A DNA stretch of 64,000 nucleotides, taken from assembly GCF_964213995.1 (NCBI RefSeq), contig NC_135806.1, positions 139,810,001 to 139,874,000 of the forward strand, given 5' to 3'. Shown piece by piece: positions 4,073 through 50,040 of the stretch. A program made the translations under genes and the position numbers. Numbering within the stretch: the first letter of the stretch is position 1; each line of letters opens with the position of its first letter. The notes beneath the pieces are model-generated. The model was not told the DNA's origin, did no database searches, and saw only the letters and a list, made by a program, of their open reading frames with translations. Source of the stretch: Mustelus asterias. Taxonomy: Eukaryota.

Positions 4073-4345
4073 ATCATAGAAAGAATCATAGAAACCCTAC
4101 AGCGCAGAAAGAGGCTATTTGGCCCATCAAGTCTGCACCGACCACAATCCCACCCAGGTCCTACCCCCTTATCCCTACATATTTACCCGCTAATCTTCTA
4201 ACCTACGCATCTCAGGACACTAAGGGACAATTTTAGCATGGCCAATTAACCTAACCCGCACATCTTTGGACTGTGGGAGGAAACTGGAGCACCCGGAGGA
4301 AACCCACGCAGACACGAGGAGAATGTGCAAACTCCACACAGACAT
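4073..4345 (-). mobile_element. HE1-type V-SINE, head missing
   Basis: V-domain tgtggagtttgcacattctcctcgtgtctgcgtgggtttcctccgggtgc with CR1-like (ttctatga) tail. Confidence 0.85.
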
Positions 4346-12715: not shown

Positions 12716-15700
12716 TGTCATAACTCTAGGAGTCGGCTGTGAAGGAACTGTGCTTTTATTGCACTGACTGAAAATAAACAGGAACCACAAGCCTGTGGTG
12801 AACATAACAGGTCCCAACCAGGACTAAAAGATTAATGGACCTCTCTGGGTCTTGCTTTATACAGGGCTCGGTATACGAGCTCCACCTGGTTGGCTCATTA
12901 CCAATACCCAGGGAGCACGTATTCAACTAGCCCAGCTAAACGGTCAATTAATGATTCCCCATGGAGGTTATTGCATCCCTCCCCCTCCGAGACTGAGGGC
13001 TCTCCCTTGCTCCTTGAGTGCCAGGCCATCTTTCCTTTTGGCCCTTGGACTTTTTGCTGTTTCTGGTCAGGTGGTGTATAGCGTATCGGCGAGTGCCTCT
13101 TTCCTGACGATCGACAAAGTATTATTGGAGGTGGGTCTTCCTCACTGACGGCTTCTGGCTGGGCCTCCGCCATTTCAGTCTCCATTTCAGAGTCAGATAT
13201 CTCAGATTGTGTTTCGAGGCCTCCTGTTAATAAAGGTGTTTTGTCCTCCCTCCGTGTACTTGGGGTCTCCGATGGCATACCCGTCGAGTTTGCCACTTCT
13301 GTTGCCAGCTCTCGATGCTTTAAGTGGTCCACATGTTTTCTTTGCACTGTGTCTCCAACTTTTACCATGTAGGTCACTCACCTTGTTTCAAAGAGTTTTT
13401 CCTGGTGTCCATGGGGTGCTGCCTCCAAAATTTCGCACTAAGGCTGAAATTTTACCGTCCGCTTGCCCGCCACGGGAATCAGGGCGGGTGAGGCGCGAAC
13501 CATGGGAAGGTCCGTTGACCTCGGGTGGGATTTTCCGGTTTCAGGACAAGCAAGGCCGTAAAATCCATCTATGTCTCCCTCGATAAGATTCTATTCATCT
13601 GTATTTTATCATGGCCCCTTTTTTGGGCTTCTTGTTCCTCTTCCACTCTTCTATTTATGTTTGGGAATGTAAGGCTTAGCCTAGTCCGTAGGCTCCTGCC
13701 CATTATTAACTCGGCCGGGCCTACACCTGTCATTACATGTGGCATCGTTCTATAACTGAGGGGAAAATGTGCCAGTTTGGTGTCTACAGATCCCCTGATC
13801 TGTTTTTTCATTCCCCTTTTAAAAATTTGGGCAGCGTTCCACTAGTCCATTCGATGATGGGTGATAAAGGGCTTTGTGGACATGTCGTATTCTGTTTGTT
13901 TTCGTAAATGTCTTAAATTCCCTACTGGTAAATGGGCTTCTGTTGTCTGTCACTAAAACTTCTGGGATTCCATGGATACAGAAAGATTGTCATAGTTTCT
14001 GTATCGTGTTTTGCGATGTGGTGGATGTCATCCAGTGCACCTCCATTCACTTAGAATGGGTGTCAATTAAAAATAAAAACATGGAGCCCATAAATGGTCC
14101 TGCAAAGTTTGCATGTATCCTAACCCATGGCTTTCCTGGCCATTCCCAGGATTGTAGGGAAGCTACCGGTTCCGGTTTTCCTGGCACATTCTACATGATT
14201 TTACCATTTTCTCTATTCCCCATCAATACCAGGCCACCAGACGTAGCTTCTCACTAGCATCTTCAATTTTGATATGCCTGGATGACCATCAGTTTATTTA
14301 TTTTAAAGTTAGCTTATTTATTAGTCACAAGTAGGCTTACATTCACACTGAAATGAAGTTACTGTGAAAATCCCCCAGCTAAGCCGCCACACTCCTGCAC
14401 CTGTTCACGTACACTGAGGGAGAATTTTAGCCAAGCCAATTCACCTAACCCGCACATCTTTGGACTGTGGGAGGAAACCGGAGCACCCGGAGGAAACCGA
14501 CGCAGACACGGGGAGAATGTGCAGACTCCACACAGACAGTGACCCAAGCCGGGAATCGAACCCCGGTCCCTGATGCTGTGAGGCAGCAGTGCTAACCACT
14601 GTGCCACCATGCCGCCCCTTATAAAGTTCTTGAAGGACAGGCCTTTGAATGGGATGTGGGATAACTACCCGGGCTCCCCACAGGATAATGCTGTCTTCTA
14701 TGCTTAATTCCGGGGATTTTGCCACAAAAGGTTTCAAGTCTTGTGTCGGACGTTCCTGCACACCTCCATTTAATATCATGCGGCTTAGTTTCACCAATGT
14801 AGGGTTGTTTCAAGTCCAAGTCTTTATTTGTTTCGCCAAAATTGGCAAAGTGCCCATAAAATTTAATGTCATCATTACTTCATACATTTTCGGTGGTGAT
14901 GGAAAGCTTGTGGGCAAAGATAAGTGACTCAGGGTGTCTGCGTCGGTGACTTGTGTCCCTGGTCTATGTTCCAGAGTATATTCATAAGCACATAGTAATA
15001 ATGCCCATTGCTGTATTCGGGCTGACGCTTTAGGATGGATCGTTTTGTGCTCAGGAAAATGGTCCCACAGAGGTTTGTGGTCTGTTACGATTGTAAAGTG
15101 TCGATCGTATGCATATTGATGGAATTTCTTTACTGCGAAGGCCAGTGCCAAACCCCCTTTTTCTATCTGTGTGCATTTTCCTTTTCCATCAGCTGATGTC
15201 ATTGAGGCATATCGGGCGCTCCATCCCGTTGTTCCATCGGTGCGATAGAACTGCACCTATTCTGTAAGGAGAGGCGTCGCATGTTATGACCAACGGCCTT
15301 TCCGGGTTGAAATGGGTCAACACGTTGTCAGACTGCAGTTGGTGTTTTACCCTCACAAAAGCATCCTCCTGTGGTTCTTTCCATGCCCACTTCTGATGCT
15401 TTTTCAACAATGTATGTAGGGATACCAGTAAGGTTGCCAAGTTTGAAATGAACTTTCCATAATAATTTACGAGGCCAAGGAACGATTTTAATTCCGTCGT
15501 GTTCCTTGGTGTCGGAGCCTCTTTTATGGCTCTTACTCTTTCTTTGACAGGGTGTAGACCGTCTTTGTCGACCCTGTATCTGAGATATGTTACCTCTGTT
15601 GCTTGGAAAACACATTTTTCTCTTTTTAGTCTGAGCCCAGCTACCGAAAACCGTCGTAAGACTTCTGCTAAAGTTTCATGGTGTTCCTTGACAGTGGCTC

Positions 15701-22337: not shown

Positions 22338-22398
22338 ATGGGTTCTGTCTACGTTTGGCTTTCCACTGTCTTGCTGTCGGTCTCAGTGCGGGGTTTCA
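22338..22398 (+). CDS. Exon 1 (signal peptide) of an Ig-superfamily receptor gene
   Basis: ATG in good Kozak context (gagATGg). Encodes MGSVYVWLSTVLLSVSVRGF, a hydrophobic core with small residues. Phase-1 donor A|GTAGGT at 22399 joins in frame to the phase-1 acceptor at 23681. A weaker phase-1 donor G|GTTTCA at 22393 is also possible. Confidence 0.72.
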
Positions 22399-23117
22399 GT
22401 AGGTGCTTTTTAATAATAATTATTCAAATTTATTTTGTCGCATAAATTGTCCTTTTTGCGACTTCACTGCAGGGTTGAGAGTGGGTGAATGTCTAATGCA
22501 GAGTTTGAGGAACAGAGTAGAGAAAGATTGTCAGGTTTCTAGCAAGGCACAAAGAACATGAAACAGGCCATTCAACCCTCCAGCCGGTGCCCAGATTCAA
22601 TGTGATCAAGGCTGATTAGTATCCTAAAACTACAGCCAGTGCATCCTTTATCTCTGTAGCTATCTCCTTTAAACCCGAAGGTGTGGGCCATCAGGCCCCA
22701 ATGATTTGTCATAATTTAATATTTAAGTTTCTCCAATACTTCTTCTCTTTGATATTAATTTCCTCACTCTTTTTAATCCCACATTTACTGACTATTTCTG
22801 GAATAATACAAAATATTTCTTTAATGCCTCCATCATTTCCTCATTCTCATGTTAATTTCACTTGTCTTTGATCCTTAAGGACCAAATACTTGCCTTGGTT
22901 CCACACCTCTCAATATCCTCGCCAAACAGAAAACAATCCATCTCAATTCTGAGATTTTTAATTGACCCCACAGCATCAACACCTTTTGAGGGAGAGATTT
23001 CCCAATTTTCACCAAAGTTTCAATGAACAAACGATTCCGGATATCAGCCAGAACTCCCCCATCAGAAGAAATCCATTAGGTCGTCTGTTGTTACAGCTGT
23101 AAATGAACTGATATTAA

Positions 23118-23476
23118 ATCATAGAAATAGAAATAGAAATAGAAACCCTACAGTGCAGAAACAGGCCATTCGGCCCATCGAGTCTGCACCGACCACAATC
23201 CCACCCAGGCCCTACCCCCATATCCCTACACATTTACCTGCTAATCCCTCTAACCTACACATCTCAGGACACTAAGGGACAATTTTAGCATGGCCAATCA
23301 ACCTAACCCGAACATCTTTGGACTGTGGGAGGAAACCGGAGCACCCGGGGGAAACCCACGCAGACACGAGGAGAATGTGCAAACTCCACACAGACAGCGA
23401 CCCAAGCCGGGAATCGAACCCAGGTCCCTGGAGCTGTGAAGCAGCAGTGCTAACCACTGTGCTACCTTGCCGCCCC
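23118..23476 (-). mobile_element. HE1-type V-SINE, full length, intron 1
   Basis: tRNA head, V-domain, (tttcta)n tail. Confidence 0.9.
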
Positions 23477-23680
23477 TGAAGTGATCAGAGAGCATTGTGT
23501 CTGAAGAGCAAGTTTGCACTGTCACTGCACCAGAACTGGGCAATATCGGTCTGACTGGGTGATGTATCTATTTATACTCGTTGGCAGACGCAAAATATTG
23601 AATGTTGTAGTTTGTTTTTGGAATACTGACGTATGTCCCTGTGCTGTTTTAATATTCTCTCTCTCTCTTTCCCTCTACAG

Positions 23681-24064
23681 CGTATTCTAAAAATGGTTGG
23701 ACAATGAGAGTCGCAGATATTGTGAGTGTTGAGGAAGGGGGATCTGCTGTCCTGCCATGTATTTTCACCCACCCAGACACCAATCTCACAGTCACCGGCT
23801 CCGTGAAATGGTTCAACAGTTACCCAGAACATATCTTTCAGTGTACATATCCGGGTACAGACCATCCACAGGGTGAACTGTGTGAGAGTGGGAAACAGCG
23901 GGATGGGGGGAGTCAATTCAGATTTGTTGGGAACCTCAGCAACAACGATGGCTCGATAATGATGGAGCAGCTGAGCCAGGCGGAAAGTGATGGATATCAC
24001 TGCCAGGTGGACCTCAATGTTGGAAAATTTAAATCACCGAAAGAAACTATTCTGACAGTGAAAG
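23681..24064 (+). CDS. Ig V-set exon 1, Siglec-15-like domain
   Basis: Polypyrimidine tract + TACAG acceptor and G|GTGAGA donor, phase 1/1, 384 nt open. Translation WTMRVADIVSVEEGGSAVLPCIFTHP...WF...IFQC...GELC...QFRFVGNLSNNDGSI...YHCQVDL parallels Siglec-15 (WSMQVP..AVLPCTFTHP..VFRC..SELC..RFRLLGNP..YFCRVEF), including the extra Cys pair. Confidence 0.9.
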
Positions 24065-24529
24065 GTGAGAATCAATGTTCAAGGTTGTAACTGACCCTCT
24101 CGTTCAATGGGGGAAGACCCCTATCTGGTCTGGGAGATGATTTGATCTCCAAATGATGGGACAGATTTCCAAGCCCTGGTTGGATGACTTTTTAGTGCCC
24201 TGATTGACCAACTGAGCACAATGCTGAGATTAACTAATTAGGGATGCCATGGAGATGTTTTCACACGTGCATGGAATCAGGGAGTCAGAGTAGGAAAGAG
24301 GAGGGAGAACTTTTTGAATTCTTCAAGTAGGTGAGGGCAATGTACTTGCAGTGTACATGGACTTCAGTAAGGCTTTTGACAAGGTCCCACATGGGAGACT
24401 GATCAAGAAGGTAAGGTGGGAACCAGGGCAATTTGGCAAATTAGATCTAAAATTGGCTCAGTGGCAGGAGGCAAAGGATGTAGGTCAAAGGTTGTTTTTG
24501 TGACTCGAAGCCTGTGTACAGTATTTTAA

Positions 24530-24970
24530 AGTTTCAAGTTTATTTATTATTGTCACATTAACAGGGCGACACAGTAGCACAGCGGATAGCACTGCAACTT
24601 GGGGACCCGGGTTCAATTCCTGGCTTGGGTCACTGTCTGTGTGGAGTTTGCACATCCTGCCCGTGTCTGCGTGGGTTTCCTCCGGGTGCTCCAGTTTCCT
24701 CCCACATTCTGAAAGACGTGCTGGTTAGGGTGCATTGACCCGAACAGGCGCCGGATTATGGTGACGAGAGGAATTTCACAGTAACTTCATTACAGTGTTA
24801 ATATAAGCCCACTTGTGACTAATAAATAAATTAACTTAACAAGTAGGCTTACATTAACACTGCAATGAAGTTACTGTGAAAATCCCCTAATTGCCACACT
24901 CCAGCACCTGCTCGGTAACACTGAGGGAGAATTTAGCATGGCCAATGTACCGAACCAGCACGTCTTTCGG
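24530..24970. mobile_element. V-SINE (+, ~24565-24838) nested in the tail of another V-SINE (-)
   Basis: Outer tail tttattattgtcac...aagtaggcttacattaac is split by the inner copy. Confidence 0.75.
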
Positions 24971-25164
24971 TGCTGTTGTCTTGCTGTTTGTAGTGTACAT
25001 TAATGATCTAACAGGGTCTATAATTGCCTGTTTTCTCTCTACCTCCCTTTACTTATAGCACTAATACTGATCTCCTTTAGTTCCTACCTCTCACTAAACC
25101 CTGTGCTCCCCAGTATTTCTGGTATCTTATTTGTCTCCTCCTTTGTGAAGACAGAAACAAAGTA

Positions 25165-25505
25165 GAGAATCATAGAAACCCTACAGTGCAGAAAGAGGCC
25201 ATTTGGTCCATCGAGTCTGCACCGACCACAATCCCACCCAGGCCCCACCCCATATCCCTACATATTTTACCCGCTAATCCCTCTAATTTATGCATCTCAG
25301 GACACTAAGGGGCAATTTTAGCATGGCTAATCAACTTAACCCGCACATCTTTGGACTGTGGGAGGAAGCCGGAGCACCGGAGGAAACCCACGCAGACACG
25401 AGGAGAATGTGCAAACTCCACACAGACAGTGACCCAAGCCGGGAATCGAACCCAGGTCCCTGGAGCTGTGAAGCAGCAGTGCTAACTACTGTGCTACCGT
25501 GCCGA
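25165..25505 (-). mobile_element. HE1-type V-SINE
   Basis: Near-identical to 23118-23476. Confidence 0.9.
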
Positions 25506-25699
25506 CCACGTATGTATTTAGTTTGTCAGCCATTTCTTCATTCCCATTACAAATGCCCTTGTTTCTGACAGTAAGGGGCTTACATTTGTCGACATCAATC
25601 TTTTATTCTTTACAGAAACTTTTACAGTCATTTTTTATGTTATTACTCTCGTACTCTATTTTCCCCTTCTTAATCAATCCCTTCATCCTCCTTTACATC

Positions 25700-28600
25700 T
25701 TACATATAACAGTACAGCACAGAACAGGCCCTTCGGCCCACAATGTTGTGCCGAGCTTTATCTGAAACCAAGATCAAGCTATCCCACTCCCTATCATCCT
25801 GGTGTGCTCCATGTGCCTATCCAATAACCGCTTAAATGTTCCTAAAGTGTCTGACTCCACTATCACTGCAGGCAGTCCATTCCACACCCCAACCACTCTC
25901 TGCATAAAGAACCTACCTCTGATATCCTTCCTATATCTCCCACCATGAACCCTATAGTTATGCCCCCGAGTAATAGCTCCATCCACCCGAGGAAATAGTC
26001 TTTGAACATTCACTCTATCTATCCCCTGCATCATTTTATAAACCTCTATTAAGTCTCCCCTCAGCCTCCTCCGCTCCAGAGAGAACAGCCCTAACTCCCT
26101 CAACCTTTCCTCATAAGACCTACCCTCCAAACCAGGCAGCATCCTGGTAAATCTCCTCTGCACTCTTTCCAGCGCTTCCACATCCTTCTTATAGTGAGGT
26201 GACCAGAACTGCACACAATATTCCAAATGTGGTCTCACCAAGGTCCTGTACAGTTGCAGCATAACCCCACGGCTCTTTAAACTCCAACCCCCTGTTAATA
26301 AAAGCTAACACACTATAGGCCTTCTTCACAGCTCTATCCACTTGAGTGGCAACCTTTAGAGATCTGTGGATATGGACCCAAGATCTCTCTGTTCCTCCAC
26401 AGTCTTCAGAACCCTACCTTTGACCCTGTAATCCACATTTAAATTAGTCCTACCAAAATGAATCACCTCACATTTATCAGGGTTAAACTCCATTTGCCAT
26501 TTTTCAGCCCAGCTTTGCATCCTATCTATGTCTCTTTGCAGCCTACAACAGCCCTCCACCTCATCCACTACTCCACCAATCTTGGTGTCATCAGCAAATT
26601 TACTGATCCCCCTTCAGCCCCCTCCTCTAAGTCATTAATAAAAATCACAAAGAGCAGAGGACCAAGCACTGATCCCTGTGGCACTCCGCTAGCAACCTGC
26701 CTCCAATCCGAAAATTTTCCATCCACCACCACCCTCTGTCTTCGATCAGACAGCCAATTACCAATCGGCCAACTTTCCCTCTATCCCACACCTCCTCACT
26801 TTCATCATAAGCCGACCATGGGGGACCTTATCAAACGCCTTACTAAAATCCATGTATATGACATCAACTGCCCTACCTTCATCAACACACTTAGTTACCT
26901 CCTCAAAAAATTCTATCAAATTTGTGAGGCACGACTTGCCCTTCACGAATCCATGCTGACTATCCCGGATTAATCCGCATCTTTCTAAATGGTCATAAAT
27001 CCCATCCCTAAGGACCTTTTCCATCAATTTACCAACCACCGAAGTAAGACTAACCGGTCTATAATTACCAGGGTCATTTCTATTCCCTTTCTTAAACAGA
27101 GGAACAACATTCGCCATTCTCCAGTCCTCTGGCACCATCCCCGTGGACAGTGAGGACCCAAAGATCAAAGCCAAAGGCTCTGCAATCTCATCCCTTGCCT
27201 CCCAAAGAATCCTCGGATATATTTCATTAGGCCCAGGGGACTTATCGACCTTCAGTTTATTCAAAACTGCCAGGACATCCTCCCTCCGAACATCTATTTC
27301 CTCCAGCCTATTAGCCTGTAACACCTTCTCTTCCTCAAAAACATGGCCCCTCTCCTTGGTGAACACAAGAAAAGTATTCATTCATCACCTCGCCTATCTC
27401 TACTGACTCCATACACAAGTTCCCACTACTGTCCTTGACCGGCCCTAACCTCACTCTGGTCATTCTTTTATTCCTCACATAAGAGTAAAAAGCCTTGGGG
27501 TTTTCCTTGATTTTCCCGCCAAGGACTTCTCATGTCCCCTCCTAGCTCTCCTCAGCCCCTTTTTCAGCTCATTCCTTGCTAACTTGTAACCCTCAATCGA
27601 GCCATCTGAACCTTGTTTCCTCATCCCTACATAAGCTTCCCTCTTCCTTTTCACAAGACATTCCACCTCTTTCGTGAACCATGGTTCCCTCACTCGGCCA
27701 TTTCCTCCCTGCTTGACAGGGACATACCTATCAAGGACACACAGTATTTGTTCCTTGAAAAAGTTCCACTTTTCATTAGTTCCTTTCCCTGACAGTTTCT
27801 GTTCCCAACTTATGCCCCCTAATTCTTGCCTAATCGCATCATAATTACCTCTCCCCCAATTGTAAACCTTGCCCTGCCATACGGCCCTATCCCTCTCCAT
27901 TGCAATAACAAAAGACACGAATTGTGGTCACTATCTCCAAAGTGCTCTCCCACAACCAAATCTAACACTTGGCCTGGTTCATGTCCCAGTACCAAATCCA
28001 ATGTGGCCTCACCTCTTGTCGGCCTATCCACATATTGTGTCAGGAAACCCTCCTGCACACACTGCACAAAAACTGCCCCATCCGAACTATTCGACCTACA
28101 AAGGTTCCACTCAATATTTGGAAAGTTAAAGTCCCCCATGACAACTACCCTGTGACCCCCACACATATCCATAATCTGCTTAGCAATTTCTTCCTCCACA
28201 TCTCTATTACTATTTGGGGGCCTATAGTAAACTCCTAACAACGTGACTGCTCCTTTCCTATTTCTAACCTCAGCCCATATTACCTCAGTGTGCAGATCCC
28301 CTTCGAAGTGCCTTTCCGCAGCCGTTAAACTATCCTTGATTAACAATGCTACTCCTCCACCTCTTTTACCAGCTTCCCTACACTTACTGAAACATCTATA
28401 CCCCGGAACGTCCAACAACCATTCCTGTCCTTGTTCTACCCACGTCTCCGTAATGGCCACCACATCGTAGTCCCAAGTACCAATCCACGCCCCTAGTTCA
28501 TCTACCTTGTTCCGGATGCTCCTTGCATTGAAGTAGACACACTTCAAACCACCTTCCTGTCTACCTGTACCCACCCTTGACCCTGATACCTTCCCCAGTA

Positions 28601-29900
28601 CCTCACCACCCTCAACACTGACTTCTGGACTACAACTCCTTTTCCCAATCCCCTGACAAATTAGTTTAAACCCCCCTGAAGAGCCGTATCAAATTTCTCT
28701 CCCAGGATATTTGTGCCCCTCTGGTTCAGGTGCACCCCGTCCTGTTTGTACAGGTCCCACCTTCCCCAGAATGTGTTCCAATTATCCACGTATCTGAAAC
28801 CCTCCCTCCTACACCATCCCTGCAACCACATGTTTAACTGCACTCTCTCCCTGTTCCTCAACTCGCTATCACGTGGCACCGGTAACGTACCAGAGATGAC
28901 CACATGTTTTGTCTTGGCTCTCAGCTTCCAGCCCAGCTCCCGAAATTCCTGTTTTAAATCCCTGTCCCTTCTCTTACCTATGTCGTTGGTACCAATGTGT
29001 ACCACGACTTGTGACTGTTTCCCCTCCCCCTTAAGAATCCGGAAAACACGGTCCGAGACGTCACGGACCTTGGCATCCGGTAGGTAACATACCATCCGTG
29101 AGTCTCTTTTTCTGCCACAGAACCTCCTATCTATCCCTCTAACTAACGAGTCCCCAATAACTATTGCCCTCCCACTCTCCCCCTTACCCTCCCGAGCCAC
29201 AGAGACGAACACAGTGCTGGAGATCCTCTCACTGCGGCTCACCACTGGTATGTCGTCCCCCTCAACTGTATCCAAAGTGGAATACTTGTTGCTAAGGGGA
29301 ACGACCACAGGGGATCCCTGCACAGACTGCTTCCTCCCAGCCCCTCTCACCATCACCCATCTGTTTTCATTCCTCGGAGTAACTGTATCCCTAAAGCTTC
29401 TGTCTATGGCCACCTCTGCATCCCTAATGATCCTAAGTTCATCCAACTCTAGCTCCAGTTCCCTAACACGGTTTTGGAGGAGCTGCAGATGGGTGCACTT
29501 CCCACAGATGTAATCAGCAGGGACACTGTCGTCGTCCCTCACCTCAAACATAGTGCAAGAGGAACATAGCACTGCCTGCACACCCTTCCCCTCTAGATAC
29601 CTTGCCAGTACCAGGTAGAAACAGCAAAAATGAATTAAACTCACCCCTGCTCGCCCTGTCCCACAAGCCCTGTGAGCCAAAGCCCTTATAGCTCACACTC
29701 TGCTTCCCACAAGCCCTGTGAGCCAAAGCCCTTATAGCTCACACTCTGCTTCCCACACACTCCGCTGCCCGCTCCCGACGCTGCCCGCTGTATACTGCAG
29801 CCTACCTTTTATACTTCGCGCGCTTAAAAAACCCTTCCCAGATTCCTTAGCAGCCCACTTCCGGTTTTCACTTTAAACTTAAGAAAAATACTACTACAAA
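25700..29900 (-). mobile_element. Near full-length CR1/HER1-like LINE (5'UTR, ORF1, frameshifted ORF2, tail)
   Basis: ORF1 28661-~29590 with CxxC..CxxC, coiled coil and SGNH esterase (GDS, HIGTND, DGVH). ORF2 endonuclease-RT pieces 28574 to 25774. Confidence 0.95.
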
Positions 29901-29999
29901 AGTAAAGGCCAAAAAACACCACACACACTAACTGACTAAATAAATAAATAAATAATTCAATCAATCTCTCACCAGCACTCCTGCCTCCAATCACTCCCT

Positions 30000-31478
30000 C
30001 TCTGCTTGCTCCAGTGGAACAATTTGCTGAATTCTAAACTGCTTCCCTACCTCAGATCTGTTGTTTCTTCTGGCCAATGTGTATGCCTCTTCCTTGGATC
30101 CAATACTATCTCTAATTTCCCATGTAAGACATGGTTTGGCCACCTTTCCCATTTTACTTTTGTGCCAGACAGGAATAAACAATTGTTGCAGTTCACCCCA
30201 TACGCTCTTTGAATGTTTGCCATTGCCTATCCACTATCATCCCTTTAAATAACATTTCCTAATCCATCTTAGCGAACCTGCACCTCATTCCATCGTAGTA
30301 TCCTTTATTAAGATTCAGGACCCTCATCTCAGAATCAATTACCTCACTCTCCATTTTGATGAAAAATTCTACCATATTCTGGTCACAAGGAATCTTGCAT
30401 AACTAGATTATCAACTATTCCTTTCTCATTAGACAATACCCAGTCTAGGATGATCTGTTCTCTAGTTGGTCCCTCAACGTATTGCTCCAGAAAACCATCC
30501 TGTATACACTCCAAGAATGTCCCCTCTATGGTATTGTGACTAATTTGATTTGCCCAATCTATATGCAGATTAAAGTCATCTAAATTACAGATGTTCCTTT
30601 ATCACTTGCATCTCTGATTTCCTGTTTAATGTTATTCCCAACATTCCCACTACAGTTTGGGGGGCCTAGATGTCATCCCCACTAACATTTTTTTGCCCCT
30701 TAATGTTTCTTAGCTCTACCCATACAGATTCCATATGGTCAGAGCTAATATCTTTCCTCACTATTGTGTTAATTTCCTCTTTAACCGGCAATGCAACTCC
30801 ACTGCCTTTTCCTTCCTAAACACCGAGACCTCAGAGTTCAATTCCATGCCTGGTCACCCAGCAGCTGTGTTTCATAATTTTAACTATATCATACCCGTTT
30901 ATGCAATTAATTCATCCACTTTATTGAGAATGCTCCACGGATTCAGGTACAAAGCTTTAAGGCTTGCCTTTTTAACATTACTTGTTACATTCCCAATATT
31001 TTTCACTGTGACCATGTTTAATTCTGGCCCTTCGATTTCTTTGCCTATCACTTTTCTTATTCCCCTTTCTGTATTTTGTTCTTGTCCTTCATTCCCTCTC
31101 TTCAGACACCTTGCATAGATTGCCATTCTCCCCTGCCATTTCAGCTTAAACCCCAAACACTCGAGCAAATACTCACCCCTAGGACGTCAGGTGTAACCAG
31201 CCCAGTGTGTACTGGTCCCACCTCCCCCAGAACTGCTCCCAATGTCCCAGGGATCTGAAACCCTCCCCCCTCACACCATCTCTTCAGTCACGTATTCATC
31301 CGATATATCCTGCTATTTCTACTCTGACCAGCATGTGGCACTGGTAGTATTCCTGAAATCAGTACCTTTGTGGTCCTACTTTTCAACTTACTTCCTAACT
31401 CCCTATATAATGCTTTTAGGACTTCATTCTTTTTTCTACCTACATTGTTTTTACCAATGTGTATTATGACCACTGGCT
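30000..31478 (-). mobile_element. Older decayed CR1 (ORF1 end/endonuclease), continued at ~25010-25700
   Basis: LKALYLNPWSILNKVDELIA; HIGKNNVG..LKSRTTKVLISG. Confidence 0.7.
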
Positions 31479-32564
31479 AGATGGGAATATGAGGGGGTGG
31501 GTATGATCAGTAAGTTCACAGATGACACAGAATTAGAAATAGCAAGAGTCATAAAACAGGCCCCTCATAGTAGTTATACAATTGGACAGAGCATGAAACA
31601 AGAAACCATTGGGGTTTGTAGTACAGGCAATGCAATAATTGTGGGGGACATTAATTTTCATATAGACTGGGACAATCAAATTGGCAAGAGTAGTCTAGAT
31701 TGAAGGTGAGTTTGTGGAATGTTTTCTGAAGCTGCCTGTGGTGGAACCACCCACAGATAAAGCTATCTTAGATTTGGTATTGTGTAGTGAATCAGGATTA
31801 ATTAGTAATGCCATTGCAAAGAATCCACTGGGAAACAGCGATTGAATTCCAGTTTAAATTTGAAAGTGACATATCCCAAGCACAAACAAGAATCTTAAAC
31901 TTGAGCAAAACCCGTTATATAGGTATGAGGGGAGAACTGGCTAAATAGACTAAAAGGTTTGGCTGTAAATAAACAGTAGAAAACAGAAAGAATTCAAAAT
32001 GTTCAAAAGTATTTATTCTATTGAAAAAAAAACTTAGCAAGAAAGACCATAGCTCACTCAGAATGTTAGGGATAGTTTTAGATTAGAAAAGGAGGCTTCT
32101 AATATTGCAAAGAATCCTACAAGTCTGAGGATTAGGAATGTTTTAGAAACCAGCCAAGGGCAATCAAAAAGTTGACAAAAAGGGAAACGAATAGAATGTT
32201 AGAGTAAACTAGCCAGCTATATAAAAACAGATTGTAAGAGATTTTTATAAGTATATAAAAAGAAAGAGAATAACTGAAGTTAACTTTGGTCCATTAGAAT
32301 CAAAGACAGGTGAAATTAACATGAGAATGAGGAAATGATGGGGCATTAAACAAATATTTAGTATTATTCCAGAAATAGTCAGCAAACGTGGGGCTAAAAA
32401 GAGTGAGGGAATTAGGAAAATTAATGTCAAAGAGAAGTAGATCTGGAGAAACTTAAAAGATTAAATAGTGACAAATCCCAGGGGCCTGATGGCCCACTGC
32501 CTCAGACTTAAAGGCGATAACTGCAGAGATGAAGGATGTGCTTACTGGCTGTCGTTTTTCAAAA

Positions 32565-32800
32565 TTTGATTTGATTTATTATTGTCACGTATTAACGAAC
32601 AGTGAAAAGTATTGTTTCTTGCGTGCTATACAGACAAAACATACCGTTCATAGAGAAGGAAAGGAGAGAGCGCAGAATGTAGTGTTACAGTCATAGCTAG
32701 GGTGTAGAGAAAGATCAACTTAATGCAAGGTAAGTCCATTCAAAAATCTGACAGCAGCAGGGAAGAAGCTGTTCTTGAGTCGGTTGGTACGTGATCTCAG
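32565..32800 (-). mobile_element. Rex1/Babar 3' end
   Basis: Reverse complement of ~1080-1315. Confidence 0.85.
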
Positions 32801-33289
32801 AATTCATTAGCTTCAGAAAAATCTCATCAGATTTCAAGTCAGCAAATGTTACTTCATATTTCTAGAAAGGTGAGGGAGGAAATAGGGAAACACGGGCCAG
32901 TTAGTCTATATCAGTTCTTGGAAAAAAGCTGAAATCTATTATTAAGGAAGTATTGAGAATGCACTTGGAAAAACCTAATCTGATCAGCTGAGATCTAAGC
33001 TCTGCAGTCCTGCCACATTTAGTTCTGAATGGTGGCAAGCTATTAAATGGCTCCCTGGAGGAGGAGGCCCCACACAGACTGCAGTGGATTAAGAAGGCAG
33101 CTCACTACCACCTTCTCAAAGGCAATTAGCACAGGGGAATAAAAATGCTGATCTAGCCAGCAATGCCCATATCCCACGAAATAATAAAAAAAGAACAAGT
33201 CAACACAGTTTTTCTGAAGGGAAATGCTTTTTAACACATTTATTGGAGTTTTTTGAGAGTTAACTAGTAAGGGGGAACCCATAGATAAA

Positions 33290-34270
33290 GGTGCAATCTT
33301 GAGTCCACTCCCGCCATCCATGGAAATGCCAGTGGGGGACCAAGATAGGGAAGTTGCAGATCTTGCCAACAAGATCGCAATTTCGGATCTTCCCTGCCAC
33401 TCACTTAGTGATGTCATCAGGTTCGCGTCCACAAAGAGCGTGAATCTGATTTACATACATTTCAATACATTTGAATATTATTAAAATGACCCCTCGCCAG
33501 ATATTGACCTCCAGCCCCTGTATTTTCAAATCACACCAATGTAACGTCACGTCGGTGTGGTTTACAACAGGTTCACCCAGATGTGAATCTGTCATGGGGA
33601 TTCCCCCGGGGGTGTAAAGGTAAGTATAGCTCCCGGGGGGCGGGGGGGGCACATAGGCAGGCAGTGGCCTGGCAATTCCCCCTGGCACTGCCCATTGGCA
33701 CAGGTCAGCATTGCCAGGTTGGCACCATGGCCATGCTACCTTGGCAGTACCACTCTAGGAGCGCCACCCTGGCAACATCAACCAGCACTAAGGTACGGAC
33801 CGCAGTGGTAGCCTCAGGCGAGAGGGATTCATTTATATAAGTTGGTGGGCTAGAGCAGGCAGGGGAGCAGGAGATGCCAGCAATGGTCGTTTTGGAGTGG
33901 GCGGGGTGCCAGCTCTGACTGTGGGGTGGGCGGGGGAGGAGTGAAGATGAAGGGGCCGCTAATCGCAACTGGGGCTGGGGAGGTTTGAGTTGAATGTCGG
34001 CTCCAATGGGGATGGGGTGGAGAGAGGTGCCCTTGAAACCTCCGTGGTGAGCTGCGGGGTGAGCTTTAATGCTGTTCTAATGGGATCTCAGTGCAGACGG
34101 GCTTTGCTGGTGTGTTGAGGCTCCGTCCCCTTGCCTGACAACGCCCCCTTGATTTTTTTTGGCAGAGTGTCATAAGATCTGAAGAGAAACCAGCCTGTTT
34201 CTCTGGAGATAAACACGTCGGTTTTCTCACTGGAAACAAAACTGTGCCATTTTTTTGGAAGATTTCACCC
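33290..34270. mobile_element. ~1 kb non-autonomous DNA-transposon-like element (possibly PIF/Harbinger-derived)
   Basis: Imperfect terminal inverted repeats ggtgcaatctt / aagatttcacc; cleanly interrupts a CR1 RT; GC-rich interior. Confidence 0.6.
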
Positions 34271-34559
34271 ACAGTATATCTGGATTTCCAGAAGGTTTTC
34301 AACAAGGTGTCCCACAAAAGGTTAATATGCAAGACAAAGGCTCATGGAGTCAGATGTAATGTTTTAGCATGGATCGATTGTTTAATATATAGAGAGTGGG
34401 CATAAATAGGGCTTTTTCAAGTTGGCAGGCAGTGAATAGCGTTGTGCCAAAGGAATCAGAGCAGGGGCCTCAGGGCGTTCCGGTGGCACAGTGGCATTGT
34501 TGCCTCACAGCGCCAAAATTCCGGGTTCGATTCCAGCCTTGGGTGACTGTCTGTGGGGA

Positions 34560-37170
34560 AAGTAATGACTTTAACAAGGCCCACAGTGTGGACCTCTTAG
34601 AATACGAGCTCACAGATTAAGGCAGTAATGGCTTGTCCATTCAGGGAGCCCTGCATGTGTACATAATGTGGAGTGTCAGGGTTACTGGCACTCTGTGTTT
34701 ATGGTCTGTATGAAAAAGTACCTGGCTGAGTGTTGCTGACTATGTAAATAAATCTAAACTTGGTGAAGTGAGGAGTTTTTTCAGTGGCGACATGGTAAAA
34801 CATAACCCTGAAGGAATTCATGCTCAACAGTTGGCCTAAGTTGGGATAAGCCATTCTAATGCTTCAGGCCTTTGTTTGGAAGTTTACACTTGTTCAACCC
34901 TGTCAAGGACTGGGCCCAATATGTGGAACGCATGTGTTACTTTTTTTGGGCAAACGACATTATGGCAGACGAAAAACAACGGGTAATTCTCCTGACTGCC
35001 TGTGGGGCTTCAGTATTCGCTGTCTTTCGGAGTTTAACTTTCTCTGAGGCACCTTTCAAGAGTTGACTGAACCAGTTAGAGAATACTACGACCCCAAGCC
35101 ATCCCTAATTCTGAGATGTTATTGCTTTTACTCGGCAATCTGAGAGCCAGAGGAATCTGTCACGGGTTTCCTAACCAGGTTAAGATAACTAGCGGAAGCA
35201 TGTGAATTTGGTTTAACCCTTAACGAAGTGCTGAGGAACCATCTGGAATGCAGGATTAATAACGTAACTATTCAAAACCACCTATTAGCTGAAGCTCAAC
35301 TGGACTACAGCTGGCCTTATCATTGGGAAATGCTGCAAGTGGAGCACGAATTGCAAAGCACCCAGTAGAAGTGGACAGCCAGGCCAGTTCGACTGAGTTC
35401 GGGGATCACCACTTGAGTACAGATGATTACATAGCCTCACTCAGAAAGTATCCAGATACACATAACTCCAGGTCTACCCACAGCACAGCCTCAAAACAAA
35501 GCCAAACTTTGGCCAGTCACAAGTCCCTTCAGAATCTCACATTGTAATTGTTGTCGGTATGCAGAGTCGAAACAACAAAGGAGTGCTACAAGACCTAGAT
35601 TTAGAAAAACAACTCATAGGCTGGTATGCAGGAAAGTTCAGATCTCGGAAGGTCTGATTTAGAACAATTAAATTGCATATCGATGTCCAAGTCAGACCCA
35701 ATCAAGATAAATGTATGGTTAAATGGGCATCCAGTACTAATGGAGGTCGATACCAGTGCGGCCATATCAATGGTCAGAGAATCAATGTTCCATAAAATTT
35801 GCTCTGAACTCCAGCCCTTAACTTTACTCAATATTTCAGCAAGGCTGCGAAACTATACAGGGAAACCTTTGTGAATTGTGGGTACAACCTTAGTCACTCT
35901 TTCCTGTGAAAGGCAGCTGGTTCGGTTACCAGTGATTGTAGTGGAGGCTTCAGGGCCAAGCCTAATGGAACAAAATTAGTGGCGAGAGATCCACCTAGAT
36001 TGGCTCAACATTTTTAAGCTAGAGGATGGCCACCTTAGTGAAGTCCTGCTTAAATACCCTAAAGTTTTCCAGGAAGGTCTAGGGACCAAAAAAGGAGCCA
36101 AGGCGACCTTATGTTGACCAGGAAGCGATTCCACGATTTTGCAAGGTCTGCCCAGTACCAATTGCCTTGTAGGAAAAAGTTGAAGCAGAAATCTGAAGAC
36201 TGGAACATGAAGGGATCATCAAAGCAGTCCAATTTGCGGAATGGGCAGCACCAGTCATACCAATTTTGAAACCAGGTGGATCAGTCCGCTTTTGTGGGGA
36301 TTTTAAATAAATGGCAAACAGTTTCTCAAAGTTGGATAAATACCCAATCCCTCGGATCAAGGATTTATGCATGAAGTTTTCAAAACTTGATGCGAGTCAT
36401 GCTAACTTACAATTATAGGTAGATGAGGATTCCCAGAGATATTCATACTCATAAGAGTCTTTACCAATACACTAGACTGCCATTTGGAGTATTGTCAGCC
36501 TGCGCAATCTCCCAGAAAATGATGGAGAACATTTTACAAGGTCTACCTCAAGTTGCTCCTTATCTGGATGATATCCTCATAACAGGAAAAACATATAAGG
36601 AGCACCTGGAGAACCTTGAGGAAGTTCGAAATCAGTTTTCAAAGACAGGCATATGCCTAAGAAGAAAATGTGTATTCCAGATCTCCCAAGTGACCTATTG
36701 GTGCTACAGAGCAGACAAGTCTGGTCTGCGCCCCTTGGCGGACAAGGTGCAGGCATTCAAAGGTGTCCCGGCTCTCACATCCATCCAGGAGTTAAGATTA
36801 TTTCTGGGGTTGGTAACCTACTTTGGGAAATTTATACCCAACCATGCCTCCACCCTGGCTCCATTACACCAACTACTAAAAAAGGATCAGCCTGGGGAGT
36901 GGTCGTCCCGTCAATTCTTGGTTTTCAATAATGTAAAGCAATGTTCGTCGAATGTAATGACACATTATGATCCCAGGAAAGAACTATTACTGATTTGCGA
37001 CGTGTCCTCATATGACAACAGGGCGGTATTGGCACATAGGTGGCCAAACAGAGAGAAATGCCCAATTGTGTACGCTTCCAGGACCTTGGCTGTCGCGGAA
37101 CACAAATATGCCCACTTCAACAAAGAAGGGATGGTGGTGATAAATGATCTGAAAAAATTCCACCAGGACC
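34560..37170 (+). mobile_element. Decayed Gypsy (Mag-like) element: LTR remnant, gag, PR, RT, RNase H
   Basis: DWAQYVERM..ILLTACG; MEVDTSAAIS; RLPFG, YLDDIL; ICDVS..YASRTL. PBS-like tggcgac near 34785. Confidence 0.85.
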
Positions 37171-37704
37171 TATGTCAGAAGTGTTTAATCTACCAAGACA
37201 AAACTATCCTCGATTGTCATAAAAACCCATCTGGTTCGCTAATGTCATTTTGGGAAGGAAATCGATCTGCTTCCTTTCCTAGTCTGGTCACTTCCATTGA
37301 AAGAATAAAAAAAAGCCTCAACAGTTAAGAGAACGTAAATTAAAGATATACTTCTGAGAATAGCTGGAGCTAAGGAGAAGTCTCCAGGCAACAGCATTCT
37401 TACAGGTGGTCCCAACAGAAGAAAATAAGTTTAAGAATTATGTGTCTTACAAGAGAATTCTTGGGGGAATTAGGAAGTAATCCTGAGTGTATAATGTATA
37501 AAATTACAAACTATATTATTAAGTTAACAGTGCTTGTTTTATTCTTTTATGTAAAACAAAGTCACTTCTGTTAAAAGAAAACTGAAATCTTGCGGTTCCA
37601 TTGGTTGAAACAAGGTATTCAGATTTTTTAATATCTTAACATCCTCAAACCAGACGGCAACATCATCCAGACACTGATCATTCTGTTGTTTGACCTTTCC
37701 TCAG

Positions 37705-38052
37705 GTGCTCGTGGAAATGACCCCGTGGTGAATGGGACTGAGGGAGCTTCGGTTACATTGCCCTGTATGTTCACACCCAGCAACACTCACAAACTGACCA
37801 CTGTTAGCTGGATGAGGAAGGAGCCCTACCAACACGTGGTCACATTTAGAGTCCAATCAAATGGATTGTGGACAACTGAAAATGGTGGAAATCGATACGA
37901 GTTCATTGGGAATCCAAAGGAAGGAAATGCCTCAATTAGGATAAACCAGTTGAGTGTGAATGACAATGACACTTACCTGTGTCTGGTGGAGTACACATCG
38001 CCCAATTATTATTATCTGATCCTGAATGAGACACGTCTGCAGGTCATACATG
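37705..38052 (+). CDS. Ig V-set exon 2, Siglec-15/PILR-like domain
   Basis: Acceptor cctttcctcAG and donor G|GTAAAA, phase 1/1, 348 nt open. Motifs EGASVTLPCMF, WMRKEPY, RYEFIGNPKEGNASIRI, DNDTYLCLVEY, TRLQV. Four N-glycosylation sequons (NGT, NAS, NDT, NET). Confidence 0.9.
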
Positions 38053-38068
38053 GTAAAAAAATCATTGC

Positions 38069-38381
38069 TAAAGTAAAGTTTATTTATTTATTAGTCACAG
38101 GTAGGCTTGCATTAACACTGTGATGAAGTTACTGTGAAAATCCCTGAGTCGCTATACTCCGGCACCTGTTTGGGTACACAGAGGGAGAATTTAGCATGGC
38201 CAAATCACCTAACCTGCACATCTTTGGACTGTGGGAGGAAATCGGGAGCACCTGGAGGAAACCCACCCAAACATATGGAGAACATGCAAACTCCACACAG
38301 ACAGTGACCCAAGCTGGGAATCGAACCTGGGTCCCTGGCTCTGTGAGGCAGCAGTGCTAACCACTGTGCCACCGTGCCGCC
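38069..38381 (-). mobile_element. HE1-type V-SINE (alternative tail) just after the V2 donor
   Basis: Head, V-domain and gtgactaataaataaat tail. Confidence 0.88.
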
Positions 38382-42554: not shown

Positions 42555-44490
42555 AAAGAACAAAAAACAATACAGCACAGGAACAGGCCCTTCGGCCCTC
42601 CAAGCCCGCGCCGCTCCCTGGTCCAAACTAGACCATTCTTTTGTATCTCTCCATTCCCACTCCGTTCATGTGGCTATCTAGATAAGTTCCCAGTGTGTCC
42701 GCCTCCACCACCTTGCCCGGCAGCACATTCCAGGCTCCCAGCACCCTCTGTGTAAAATACGTCCTTCTGATATCCGTGTTAAACCTCCCCCCCCTCACCT
42801 TGGACCTATGACCCCTCGTGAACGTCACCACCGATCTGGGAAAAAGCTTCCCACCGTTCACCCTATCTATGCCTTTCATAATTTTATACACCTCTATTAG
42901 GTCACCCCTCATCCTCCGTCTTTCCAGTGAGAACAACCCCAGTTTACCCAATCTCTCCTCATAACTAAGCCCTTCCATACCAGGCAACATCCTGGTAAAC
43001 CTCCTCTGCACTCTCTCTAAAGCCTCCACGTCCTTCTGGTAGTGTGGTGACCAGAACTGGGCGCAGTATTCCAAATGCGGCCGAACTAACGTTCTATACA
43101 ACTGCAACATCAGACCCCAACTTTTATACTCTATGCCCCGTCCTATAAAGGCAAGCATGCCATATGCCTTATTCACTACCTCCTCCACCTGTGACGTCAC
43201 CTTCAAGGATCTGTGGACTTGCACACCCAGGTCCCTCTGCCTAACTACACCCTTTATGGTTCTGCCATTTATCGTATAACTCCCCACCATGTTAGTTCTA
43301 CCAAAATGCATCACTTCGCATTTATCAGGATTGAACTCCATCTGCTATTTCTTTGCCCAAATTTCCAGCCTATCTATATCCTTCTGTAGCCTCTGACAAT
43401 GTTCCTCACTATCTGCAAGTCCAGCCATTTTCGTGTCGTCCGCAAACTTACTGATCACCCCAGTTACACCTTCTTCCAGATCGTTTATATAAATCACAAA
43501 CAGCAGAGGTCCCAATACAGAGCCCTGCGGAACACCACTAGTCACAGGCATCCAGCTGGAAAAAGACCCTTCCACTACCACCCTCTGTCTTCTGTGACCA
43601 AGCCAGTTCTCCACCCATCTAGCCACCTCCCCCTTTATCCCATGAGATCCAACCTTTTGCACCAACCTACCATGAGGGACTTTGTCAAACGCTTTATTAA
43701 AGTCCATATAGACGACATCCACGGCCCTTCCCTCGTCAACCATTCTAGTCACTTCTTCAAAAAACTCCACCAGGTTAGTGAGGCATGACCTCCCTCTCAC
43801 AAAACCATGCTGACTATCGTTAATGAGTTTATTCCTTTCTAAATGCGCATACATCCTATCTCTAAGAATCCTCTCCAACAACTTCCCTACCACGGACGTC
43901 AAGCTCACCGGCCTATAATTTCCTGGGTTATCCTTCCTACCCTTCTTAAATAACGGGACCACATTAGCTATCCTCCAATCCTCTGGGACCTCACCTGCGT
44001 CCAGTGACGAGACAAAGATTTACGTCAGAGGCCCAGCGATTTCATCTCTCGTCTCCCTGAGCAGCCTTGGATAGATTCCATCAGGCCCTGGGGATTTGTC
44101 AGTCTTTATATTCCCTAAAAAACCTAACACTTCCTCCCTCGTAATGGAGATTTTCGCTAACAGGTCAACACTCCCCTCCGAGACACTCCCAGTCAACACA
44201 TCCCTCTCCTTTGTGAATACCGACGCAAAGTATTCATTTAGGATCTCCCCTACTTCTTTGGGCTCTAAGCATAATTCCCCACTTTTGTCCCTGAGAGGTC
44301 CGATTTTTTCCCTGACAACCTTTTTGTTCCTAACGTATGAATAAAATACCTTGGGATTCTCCTTAATCCTGTCTGCCAAGGACATTTCGTGACCCCTTTT
44401 TGCCCTTCTAATTCCTCGTTTGAGTTCTTTCCTACTTTCTTCGTACTCCTCCAGAGCTCCCTCTGTTTTTAGCTGCCTGGACCTAACGTA
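42555..44490 (-). mobile_element. Young CR1, 3' 1.9 kb
   Basis: Nearly continuous ORF2 (44385 to 42628); same subfamily as 61645-64000. Confidence 0.93.
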
Positions 44491-49039: not shown

Positions 49040-50040
49040 CATCCGTGTGCGTGTTGATTGTAACAAACTTTCGGGAAGGCTCGTCTAATTCAAGTTGGGG
49101 ATAGGCAAAGCTCATATCCAACTTCGAGAATGCCTGGCCACCTGCCAACCTGGTGTGCAGGTTTGTGATTCAGGGCATGGGGTAACCATCAAGTTTGGAA
49201 ACCCAGTTGAATGCACTGTGGCTCAGTGGTTAGCGCTGCTGCCTCACAGCTCCAGGGACCCGAGTTCAATTCCAGCCTTGGGTCACTGTCTGTGTGGAGT
49301 TTGCACATTCTCCCCGTGTCTGTGTGGGTTTCCTCCGGGTGCTCCGGTTTCCTCCCACACTCCAAAGATCTGCAGGTTAGGTGGATTGGCCATGGTAAAT
49401 TCCCCTTTAGTGTCCAAAGATGTGTAGGTAAGGGGGGATGGCATGGCAAATGTGCAGGGTTATGGGGATAGGGCGGAGGGAAGGGTCTGAGTGAGATGAT
49501 CTTTCGGACAAACGGTGCAGATTCAATGGGCTGAATGGCCTCTTTCTGCACTGTATGGATTCTAATTGACTGTTGCTTATAGTCCCCTTAGTGACAAACC
49601 GACTTGTCCGGTTTAAAGGCTGGCAAGACAGGCATCTCCCAATCTGCAAATTGCACGGGCCTTATTATGCCCAGATTTTCCAGGTACCTGAGTTAGTCTC
49701 CACCTTTTCCAATAGGAAGTATGGAACCAGTCTCGCTCTAACACACTTAGGCGTAGCATCAGCTTTGACACAGATCTCGGTTTTAAGCCCCTCTTATTTT
49801 TCCCAGTCCTTCCTGGAAAACTTCAGGGTATCTGCTGATAACTTCACACAGCCCCCAACACCCAGCCTGAAGATCTCCAACCAGATCTCCAACCAGTTCA
49901 GCCAATCTCTCGCTGGAGCCAATCTCTCCCATAAGGTTTAGTCTTGCCCCTGTACAACAAAAGTGGAAGTCGGGCTGATCGCTGCCTGTATGTCACTGCG
50001 GTCATCATGGTGCCTCTTATTTGTAATGGTTCCTTACGTA
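49040..50040 (-). mobile_element. Gypsy RT N-terminal fragment with nested HE1 SINE (+, ~49215-49565)
   Basis: LAGGQAFSKLDMSFAY..FVTINTH; VQFADW..KPDKS..GDYK. Confidence 0.7.

Follow-up and report, generated by a model that had tools for sequence, protein, structure and literature searches.

Results

The stretch of the Mustelus asterias genome analysed here (64,000 nucleotides of contig NC_135806.1, positions 139,810,001 to 139,874,000 of the forward strand; hereafter the window) carries three forward-strand exons that very probably form the 5′ part of a gene for a type I membrane receptor, one of an elasmobranch-wide multigene family of paired immunoglobulin superfamily (IgSF) receptors related to Siglec-15. 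Exon 1 (22338..22398) holds the start codon, which reads gagATGg in its context, and the signal peptide (MGSVYVWLSTVLLSVSVRGF plus 1 base), and ends in phase 1 at the donor CA/GTAGGT (slashes in splice signals mark the exon border). Intron 1 (22399..23680, 1282 nt) closes with a pyrimidine tract and the acceptor ctctacAG/, after which exon 2 (23681..24064; 127 full codons, phase 1-1; donor AAAG/GTGAG) encodes V1, a membrane-distal V-set domain of Siglec type. Intron 2 extends over 13640 nt (24065..37704) to the acceptor cctcAG/ of exon 3 (37705..38052; 115 full codons, phase 1-1; donor ATG/GTAAAA), which encodes the membrane-proximal V-set domain V2. Together the exons (61 + 384 + 348 = 793 nt) give 264 codons plus 1 base without interruption, with all junctions in phase 1, and the frame has no stop codon because the gene runs on past the window. 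With both V exons in phase 1-1, leaving either of them out of a transcript would not break the frame. Direct reading of the sequence thereby bore out the preliminary description of this DNA in its claim of three phase-1 exons with canonical splice sites and a 264-codon open frame, and the motifs quoted there are all present (LPCIFTHP, IFQC/ELC and FRFVGN in V1; WMRKEPY, FIGNP and YLCLVEY in V2).

Each exon was translated and searched on its own; the exons were never joined. Both large exons proved to be V-set, as had been proposed (Pfam, gathering score 26 bits: V1 E 4.4e-10, V2 E 1.3e-19), and shark homologues match V1 at E 3e-41 and V2 at E 3e-55, a signal far beyond chance. The leader is 71% identical over 21 aa to that of the related protein P0001, and the leaders of P0007, P0010 and P0182 stand in the same leader-V1 layout as in the window. 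A tblastn search of the window with V1 and V2, intron 2 included, recovered only the two exons themselves and their mutual match, hence no further V-like exon, and no second leader exon was found before V2.

To follow the splicing of V1 to V2, reads and contigs of four sequencing runs (X1-X4) were aligned with 536 letters around V2 (37560-38095), where both borders of this exon can be read. Run X2 (library “METAGENOMIC RNA-Seq”, labelled fish metagenome) gave a 203-nt contig lying on 37703-37873 with 8 differences, in which the 30 letters preceding V2 are those of the V1 3′ end at 24033-24062 (30/30 identical). The AG at 37703-37704 fits the intron acceptor as well as the last two bases of V1, and the contig reads ...GTGAAAG/GTGCTCG...; it joins V1 to V2 exactly at 24064/37705, the junction singled out for checking in the preliminary description, with the 13.6-kb intron removed. 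Contigs of X1 and X3 (different organisms, 92-97% alike) have a V1-like 3′ end before 37711, translating GTTLKLRDA and GTTLDLRST, comparable to TTGTALRLRDA of Mustelus P0007. They also leave V2 exactly at 38052 and continue with letters translating AAKTFPIVIL.., the start of the lysine-type transmembrane exon of Mustelus P0004 (AAETFPIVILCIPLGVKLL). In X1-X3 neither intron flank has any depth, and the DNA-like run X4 covers the flanks.

These contigs bear on the idea that V1 and V2 are exons of two genes, or that V2 is an orphan exon. The 13.6 kb between the domains and their low mutual identity (31% over 101 residues, tblastn) would suit it, as would the relatives in RefSeq that have V1 only (9 of 96 proteins) or V2-type domains only (10 of 96). 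Against it, V2 comes directly after V1 in 77 of the same 96 proteins (nine of the 77 with three or four domains, e.g. V1-V2-V1-V2), the X2 contig makes the exact join, X1 and X3 show V1-like sequence ahead of V2, and V2 lacks a leader of its own. We regard two separate genes as extremely improbable, and a single gene with the leader-V-V layout claimed earlier agrees with both the junction contig and the domain order of the related proteins.

V1 is Siglec-15-like in sequence and predicted fold. Its best match by sequence among solved structures is human Siglec-15 (7zoz_A, E 3.8e-11), followed by Siglec-8 (6.3e-07), JAML (1.4e-06) and CD33 (1.4e-03). Its AlphaFold model (predicted local distance difference test, pLDDT, 84.2) likewise finds 7zoz_A first in Foldseek (E 9.2e-10, TM-score 0.76, 30% identity), and Siglec-8, sialoadhesin, CD33 and Siglec-7 come next. 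The V domain of Siglec-15 has two disulfides, C64-C142 and C95-C104, and its R143 forms the salt bridge to sialic acid, the R143A exchange abolishing binding (PMC10264397). In V1 the codons for Cys54 (23842-23844, forward strand) and Cys67 (23881-23883, forward strand) align with C95 and C104, the tryptophan of the GW(T)M motif aligns on Siglec-15 W44, and the extra-pair columns hold Cys in 90/92 and 88/92 V1 domains of the family. At the site of R143, the residue after the strand-F Cys, a CAG codon (24004..24006, forward strand) places Gln108 (YHCQVDL vs YFCRVEF). Across the 92 V1 domains this position is Arg in 73, His in 7, Cys in 3, Gly in 3, Ser in 2 and Gln (the window), Tyr and Lys in 1 each, with 1 gap, and no fewer than 6 changes in Arg state are required on the V1 tree.

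Since V1 keeps all 19 invariant columns of the family alignment A2, it does not look decayed at the level of its sequence. Its terminal branch is long (0.36 vs 0.074 for V2), and it is 68% identical to V1 of Mustelus P0007 over aligned columns (62% by BLAST) vs 84% for V2. Faster evolution of V1 than of V2 is clear for the window against Mustelus but modest across the family, where mean identity is 55.2% for V1 vs 59.1% for V2 and V2 is the higher in 211 of 300 pairs.

The earlier view saw Siglec-15-type motifs in both domains; V1, with its best matches and C95-C104-type pair, is specifically Siglec-15-like, and V2 is a more generic V-set domain. By sequence, the solved structures that V2 matches best are those of pIgR (E 6e-11 as the sum over four domains, with 24 bits for the best single stretch), TIM-2 (41.6 bits) and Siglec-15 (39 bits). 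The top folds for its model (pLDDT 90.2) are nectin-1, nectin-2, Nav-beta2, CRIg and CAR; Siglec-15 stands at rank 24 by E-value among the fold matches, yet with the highest query TM-score listed (0.81). V2 lacks the extra cysteine pair and has Leu93 (37983-37985) where V1-type domains have the Arg. It keeps all 9 invariant columns of alignment A3; its identity is 84% with Mustelus P0007 and 83% with P0004. That V2 is a duplicated Siglec-15 V exon, as had been proposed, was not shown, given the low identity to V1, the missing cysteine pair and the rank of Siglec-15 by fold.

The gene is one of many of its kind. Short queries found relatives of V1 in Chiloscyllium plagiosum, C. punctatum (“hypothetical protein”) and Hemiscyllium ocellatum, and relatives of V2 in Mustelus asterias, H. 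ocellatum and Cetorhinus maximus. An unrestricted HMMER search with V2 returned 455 proteins at E<=1e-3, the match often starting near residue 150, as expected after a leader and V1. With the full Mustelus P0007 as query, 86 proteins were obtained at E<=1e-10, all of them elasmobranch and spanning six shark orders, skates, stingrays, electric rays, mantas and sawfish. P0016 and P0227 are family members from Leucoraja. The suggestion that the gene belongs to a multigene family of immune receptors was thus upheld with at least 86 relatives. Many loci occur per genome, e.g. at least 10 LOC numbers in Hemiscyllium, and the RefSeq names of the relatives are inconsistent (uncharacterized, pIgR-like, Siglec-15, -12, -10, JAML, A33-like, sialoadhesin-like, HAVCR1-like, CD33-like). 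No product of the window itself was flagged among the matches of the protein searches. The gene is therefore hidden, as it had been called, in this genome within the searched protein collection, although relatives in about 20 elasmobranch genomes are on record as automatic RefSeq models.

The C-termini of 96 proteins fall into 31 with an immunoreceptor tyrosine-based inhibitory motif (ITIM), 27 with a transmembrane lysine, three of a third type and 35 that are incomplete or other. In the ITIM type an uncharged transmembrane segment is followed by a long tail with V-[IVT]-Y-[AS]-x-[VI] at its end, which fits the ITIM signature given in PMC7226832. The lysine type has the segment CIPLG(V/L)K(L/T)L..LLVMW and a short tail. 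The third (YLPVIPTLLILPICFIIFI; YLPVIP(T/M)LLILPIC(F/V)IIFI), seen in P0003, P0166 and P0189 of H. ocellatum, has a 61-residue tail without ITIM or transmembrane lysine. Within species, activating and inhibitory ectodomains are 75-94% identical over V1 and V2 (7 pairs) and cluster by species in the tree. Because of this near-identity and clustering, we read the sequences of the family as those of paired receptors, for which this is the expected pattern.

Phylogenetic analysis was performed with IQ-TREE on 67 domains, with a PILR-like protein of Pristis as arbitrary outgroup and without human Siglec-15, CD33, CD22, PILR, NKp30, CD300 or pIgR sequences; at the deep nodes long branches meet, as a warning of the tool indicated. 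Both window domains fall within the family clades and in the right order after the leader, V1 in the V1 clade (100/99) and V2 in the V2 clade (100/98), and the closest company of the window is Mustelus (V2 95/96), within a set of carcharhiniform sequences (V1 98/95).

The order V1-V2-C2-transmembrane characterises a second chondrichthyan clade (P0044, P0041, P0045, P0238, P0111, P0013, P0020, P0015). It includes Callorhinchus milii P0044 and Mobula P0041 with a transmembrane lysine, Heptranchias P0045 with an ITIM tail, Pristis P0238, Narcine P0111, and Amblyraja P0013 and P0020 with repeated V2 domains. The second domains of this C2-bearing clade join family V2 at 100/95 and its first domains join family V1 at 94/87. 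As first joins first and second joins second, the V1-V2 tandem is older than the split of the C2-bearing and C2-less subfamilies and the pairing ancient. A recent duplication of the V exon was accordingly considered and rejected, the V1 and V2 lineages being separate already before that split.

Rooted on the Pristis PILR-like protein, V2 is sister to a group of the V domains of lungfish Siglec-15 plus V1. The lungfish domains pair with each other at 99/96 and sit weakly on the V1 side (81/0), and by profile score they are slightly nearer to the V2 profile (107 vs 82-86), the seven domains of P0014 being nearer to V1. V2 may go back to an ancient duplication of a V domain of Siglec type, or it may have been acquired by capture from a different V-set gene; if it arose by duplication, the sequences would put the event very long ago. 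Among lungfish proteins, P0014 of Protopterus annectens (1128 residues) has seven tandem V1-type domains, and the Siglec-15 isoform P0034 has two Siglec-15-type V domains before its C2. Sharks are therefore not alone in showing tandem V duplication in this gene lineage.

The closeness of V1 to Siglec-15 raises the possibility that the window holds the shark SIGLEC15 orthologue with a duplicated V exon. Among solved structures V1 matches Siglec-15 best, by sequence as well as by fold, the special cysteine pair is present, and the activating transmembrane motif of the family, LC.PLG(V/I)KLL, resembles LCSALGIKLL of lungfish Siglec-15. However, the Arg is Gln in V1, a C2-set second domain is absent, family members passing from V2 directly to the transmembrane segment, and the tree does not place the gene as an orthologue, V1 lying in the C2-less clade, apart from the C2-bearing clade and from lungfish Siglec-15, with the V1 and V2 lineages split before the two subfamilies. 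The separate V1-V2-C2 clade with transmembrane lysine also matches human Siglec-15 more strongly and over both domains (P0044, E 4.1e-21, with 59.8 bits in the V domain and 17 bits in C2 at AEGEPP..W) than does the C2-less family member P0184 (7.5e-14, V1 only).

SIGLEC15 orthology is therefore a very improbable reading of the window gene, which belongs to the C2-less subfamily, and the V1-V2-C2-transmembrane clade is the better candidate for the orthologue. The first V domain of that clade is without the C95-C104-type pair. If that clade is the orthologue, Siglec-15 of cartilaginous fish would have one more V domain, placed between V and C2; lungfish Siglec-15 isoform X2 (P0034, XP_043934105.1) has the order V-V-C2-transmembrane (Lys).

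As to the signalling module of the receptor, we lean towards the activating type, because contigs of close relatives splice V2 to a lysine-type transmembrane exon and because loss of the Arg is found mostly in activating members. Among V1 domains with clear tail types, another residue stands in place of the Arg in 10 of the 24 activating and 1 of the 26 inhibitory ones (Fisher p 0.0016); this tie is a lead and not a result.

Several points weigh against the overall reading as a spliced, activating member of the family. The link between Arg loss and activating type fails in independent pairs (6 pairs, median p 0.5, underpowered). The 22398/23681 junction is based on homologous gene models only. 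None of the RNA-like contigs is at least 99% identical to the window (identity bands X1 0/2/1/0, X2 0/1/0/0, X3 0/1/1/0), so that contigs of X1-X3 may derive from a sister species, an allele or a paralogue rather than from this exact locus, and that these runs are RNA is itself guessed from the absence of the intron in their contigs. No transmembrane or cytoplasmic exon of any family type was found in the window on either strand. Smith-Waterman comparison of the tails of three relatives with the six frames gave a best score of 41 and no convincing match; a scan for hydrophobic windows 3′ of 38052 gave 9, none like the family transmembrane segment; and tblastn with transmembrane and tail pieces of 10 relatives gave 84 weak matches (best E 0.016), the best of them on transposable elements. 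We infer that these exons are located beyond the end of the window, at a distance of more than 25.9 kb downstream. Finally, V2 of the window ends in ..LQVIH as does the inhibitory P0007, not in ..LQVTR as does the activating P0004.

That ending (..RLQVIH, identical to P0007) is the chief argument for an inhibitory member, in which V2 would be spliced to an uncharged transmembrane exon and a long ITIM tail. Identity of V2 is also marginally higher to P0007 than to P0004, and two further observations leave room for such a member: the split-codon base, G at 38052, is compatible with either continuation, Ala (activating) or Val (inhibitory), and V2 of the window branches as sister of the two Mustelus forms combined. 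On the other hand, the contigs of relatives whose V2 3′ end is 1 letter in 33 off the window run into the lysine-type exon, and just one of the 26 inhibitory V1 domains is without the Arg. We hold an inhibitory type, the main rival reading, to be possible, though doubtful.

A truncated or decaying partial copy, the spliced contigs then coming from an intact paralogue, would account for the 25.9 kb downstream without a transmembrane or tail exon, for contigs 92-97% identical and not identical to the window, and for the long V1 branch. Near-identical paralogues are indeed probable: run X4 (37687-38060) contains a second version of the V2 exon, about 97% alike (278 letters with 9 differences, and a 3′ part of 132 letters with 19), with upstream intron letters unlike the window, and on this sequence a near-identical paralogue, perhaps a partner receptor, probably exists in the X4 organism. 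A truncated or decaying copy is improbable, however, for a gene whose three exons are open, whose five splice signals are all canonical and whose domains keep every invariant column (19 in V1, 9 in V2). Over its 30 letters of V1 the X2 contig does not differ from the window, and with a 13.6-kb intron already inside the gene a long next intron would not be unusual. A receptor gene that continues downstream is our preferred reading.

Both introns contain transposable elements, as the preliminary description had stated. Intron 1 has a copy of a short interspersed nuclear element (SINE) at ~23130-23480, of which 15 further copies or fragments lie in the window (16 in 64 kb; e.g. 4088-4344, 14411-14619, 25172-25507, 38176-38381, 49218-49567), 73-94% identical to the intron-1 copy; intron 2 has SINE copies as well. 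One SINE copy lies ~125 bp 3′ of the V2 donor. When the 10 largest open reading frames of the window were compared with Pfam, 8 had reverse transcriptase, endonuclease or RNase H families, one a GDSL-like family and one no family; the four of them in intron 2 all belong to transposon-type families (reverse transcriptase, endonuclease, RNase H or GDSL-like). Parts of a long interspersed nuclear element (LINE) occupy ~26.7-29.7 kb of intron 2 on the minus strand (26758-29677), with a GDSL-like esterase at 28661-29677, an endonuclease at 27819-28571 and a reverse transcriptase at 26758-27378. Because each lies in a separate reading frame, the element looks broken. A long terminal repeat (LTR)-type reverse transcriptase/RNase H piece follows on the plus strand at 36423-37325. 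Among the transposon remains downstream of V2, a 236-residue open reading frame on the minus strand (42628-43338) matched no Pfam family at E<=0.001. Apart from the receptor gene, the window contains no gene.

Discussion

The product would be a type I membrane receptor of leukocytes. In the family the leader-V1-V2 ectodomain is carried on one of two signalling modules. The inhibitory form combines a transmembrane segment free of charge with a long tail that closes with an ITIM (V-I/T-Y-A-A/S-V/I), and the activating form a transmembrane lysine with a short tail, presumably pairing with an adaptor of DAP12/DAP10 type by analogy with Siglec-15. Canonical binding of sialic acid by window V1 is probably lost because Gln replaces the salt-bridge Arg; the domain would probably make no canonical carboxylate contact, and its ligand may be a different one, or the same surface minus that contact. 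V2 might serve as a conserved stalk or spacer domain.

The nearest tree neighbours of the window gene, the uncharacterised RefSeq models P0007 and P0004 of Mustelus, share its leader-V1-V2 layout. P0007 has an ITIM (VTYAAV) and keeps the Arg (YYCRVEL) where the window has Gln; P0004 has the transmembrane Lys, its model being without leader and V1. The likeness to Siglec-15 lies in V1 as the closest match, in the GW(S/T)M Trp, in the canonical and extra Cys pairs, and in the transmembrane lysine that activating family members have in a similar motif; in Siglec-15 this Lys recruits DAP10/DAP12 (PMC7226832). Unlike Siglec-15, the window gene has a V-set and not a C2-set second domain and Gln for Arg, and the family also has ITIM members, of which none is described for Siglec-15 in the consulted parts of PMC7226832 and PMC10264397.

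The paired Siglecs and CD33-related Siglecs of mammals include Siglec-5/14 and Siglec-11/16. The shark family resembles them in having near-identical activating and inhibitory ectodomains within a species and in the repeated replacement of the Arg. It differs in an independent origin from a Siglec-15-type stock and in the order V-V in place of V-C2(n), and its binding of sialic acid is putative.

Cartilaginous fish are already known for the modular domain immune-type receptors of the skate (MDIRs; Cannon 2006), a multigene family of IgSF receptors, activating as well as inhibitory, with similarity to CD300 and pIgR (ABC86796.1, ABC86797.1, ABC86799.1; PMC3031540). The likeness consists in a multigene family with activating and inhibitory members, and pIgR D1 and TIM proteins are among the best solved sequence matches of V2. 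The domains of the MDIRs have reportedly been described as I- or C2-set. The window domains are V-set, with V1 of Siglec type, which sets them apart from the MDIRs by description only, and MDIRs are the main prior-art risk for the family. A literature search found no published description of the leader-V1-V2 family, most subscription journals being outside its scope. What appears to be new here is the reading as paired V-V receptors derived from Siglec-15, the recurrent loss of the Arg and the locus itself, the kind of gene being already in databases as automatic models.

A wider scenario can be put forward tentatively, and we consider it more doubtful than not. Cartilaginous fish would have independently built fast-evolving paired Siglecs from a V1-V2-C2 gene of Siglec-15 type that lost its C2, a counterpart of the CD33-related Siglecs in which inhibitory members keep the Arg and read “self” sialoglycans and activating partners, the window gene included, repeatedly lose it. 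If this were true, loss of the Arg in activating members would be consistent with a defence against pathogens that turn the inhibitory receptor to their advantage.

For this genome, the analysis adds a gene whose product is absent from the searched protein collection. In fish, only Siglec-1, CD22, MAG and Siglec-15 are regularly present, Siglec-15 being activating, coupled to DAP12 and in possession of the conserved Arg (PMC7226832). Sharks and rays appear to differ from this picture with at least 86 models at many loci, partners with ITIM and with transmembrane lysine, a V-V ectodomain and recurrent Arg loss. If binding is confirmed, the inconsistent RefSeq names could be corrected, the family would offer an independent test case for the evolution of paired receptors, and paired and inhibitory Siglec signalling would go back to the earliest jawed vertebrates.

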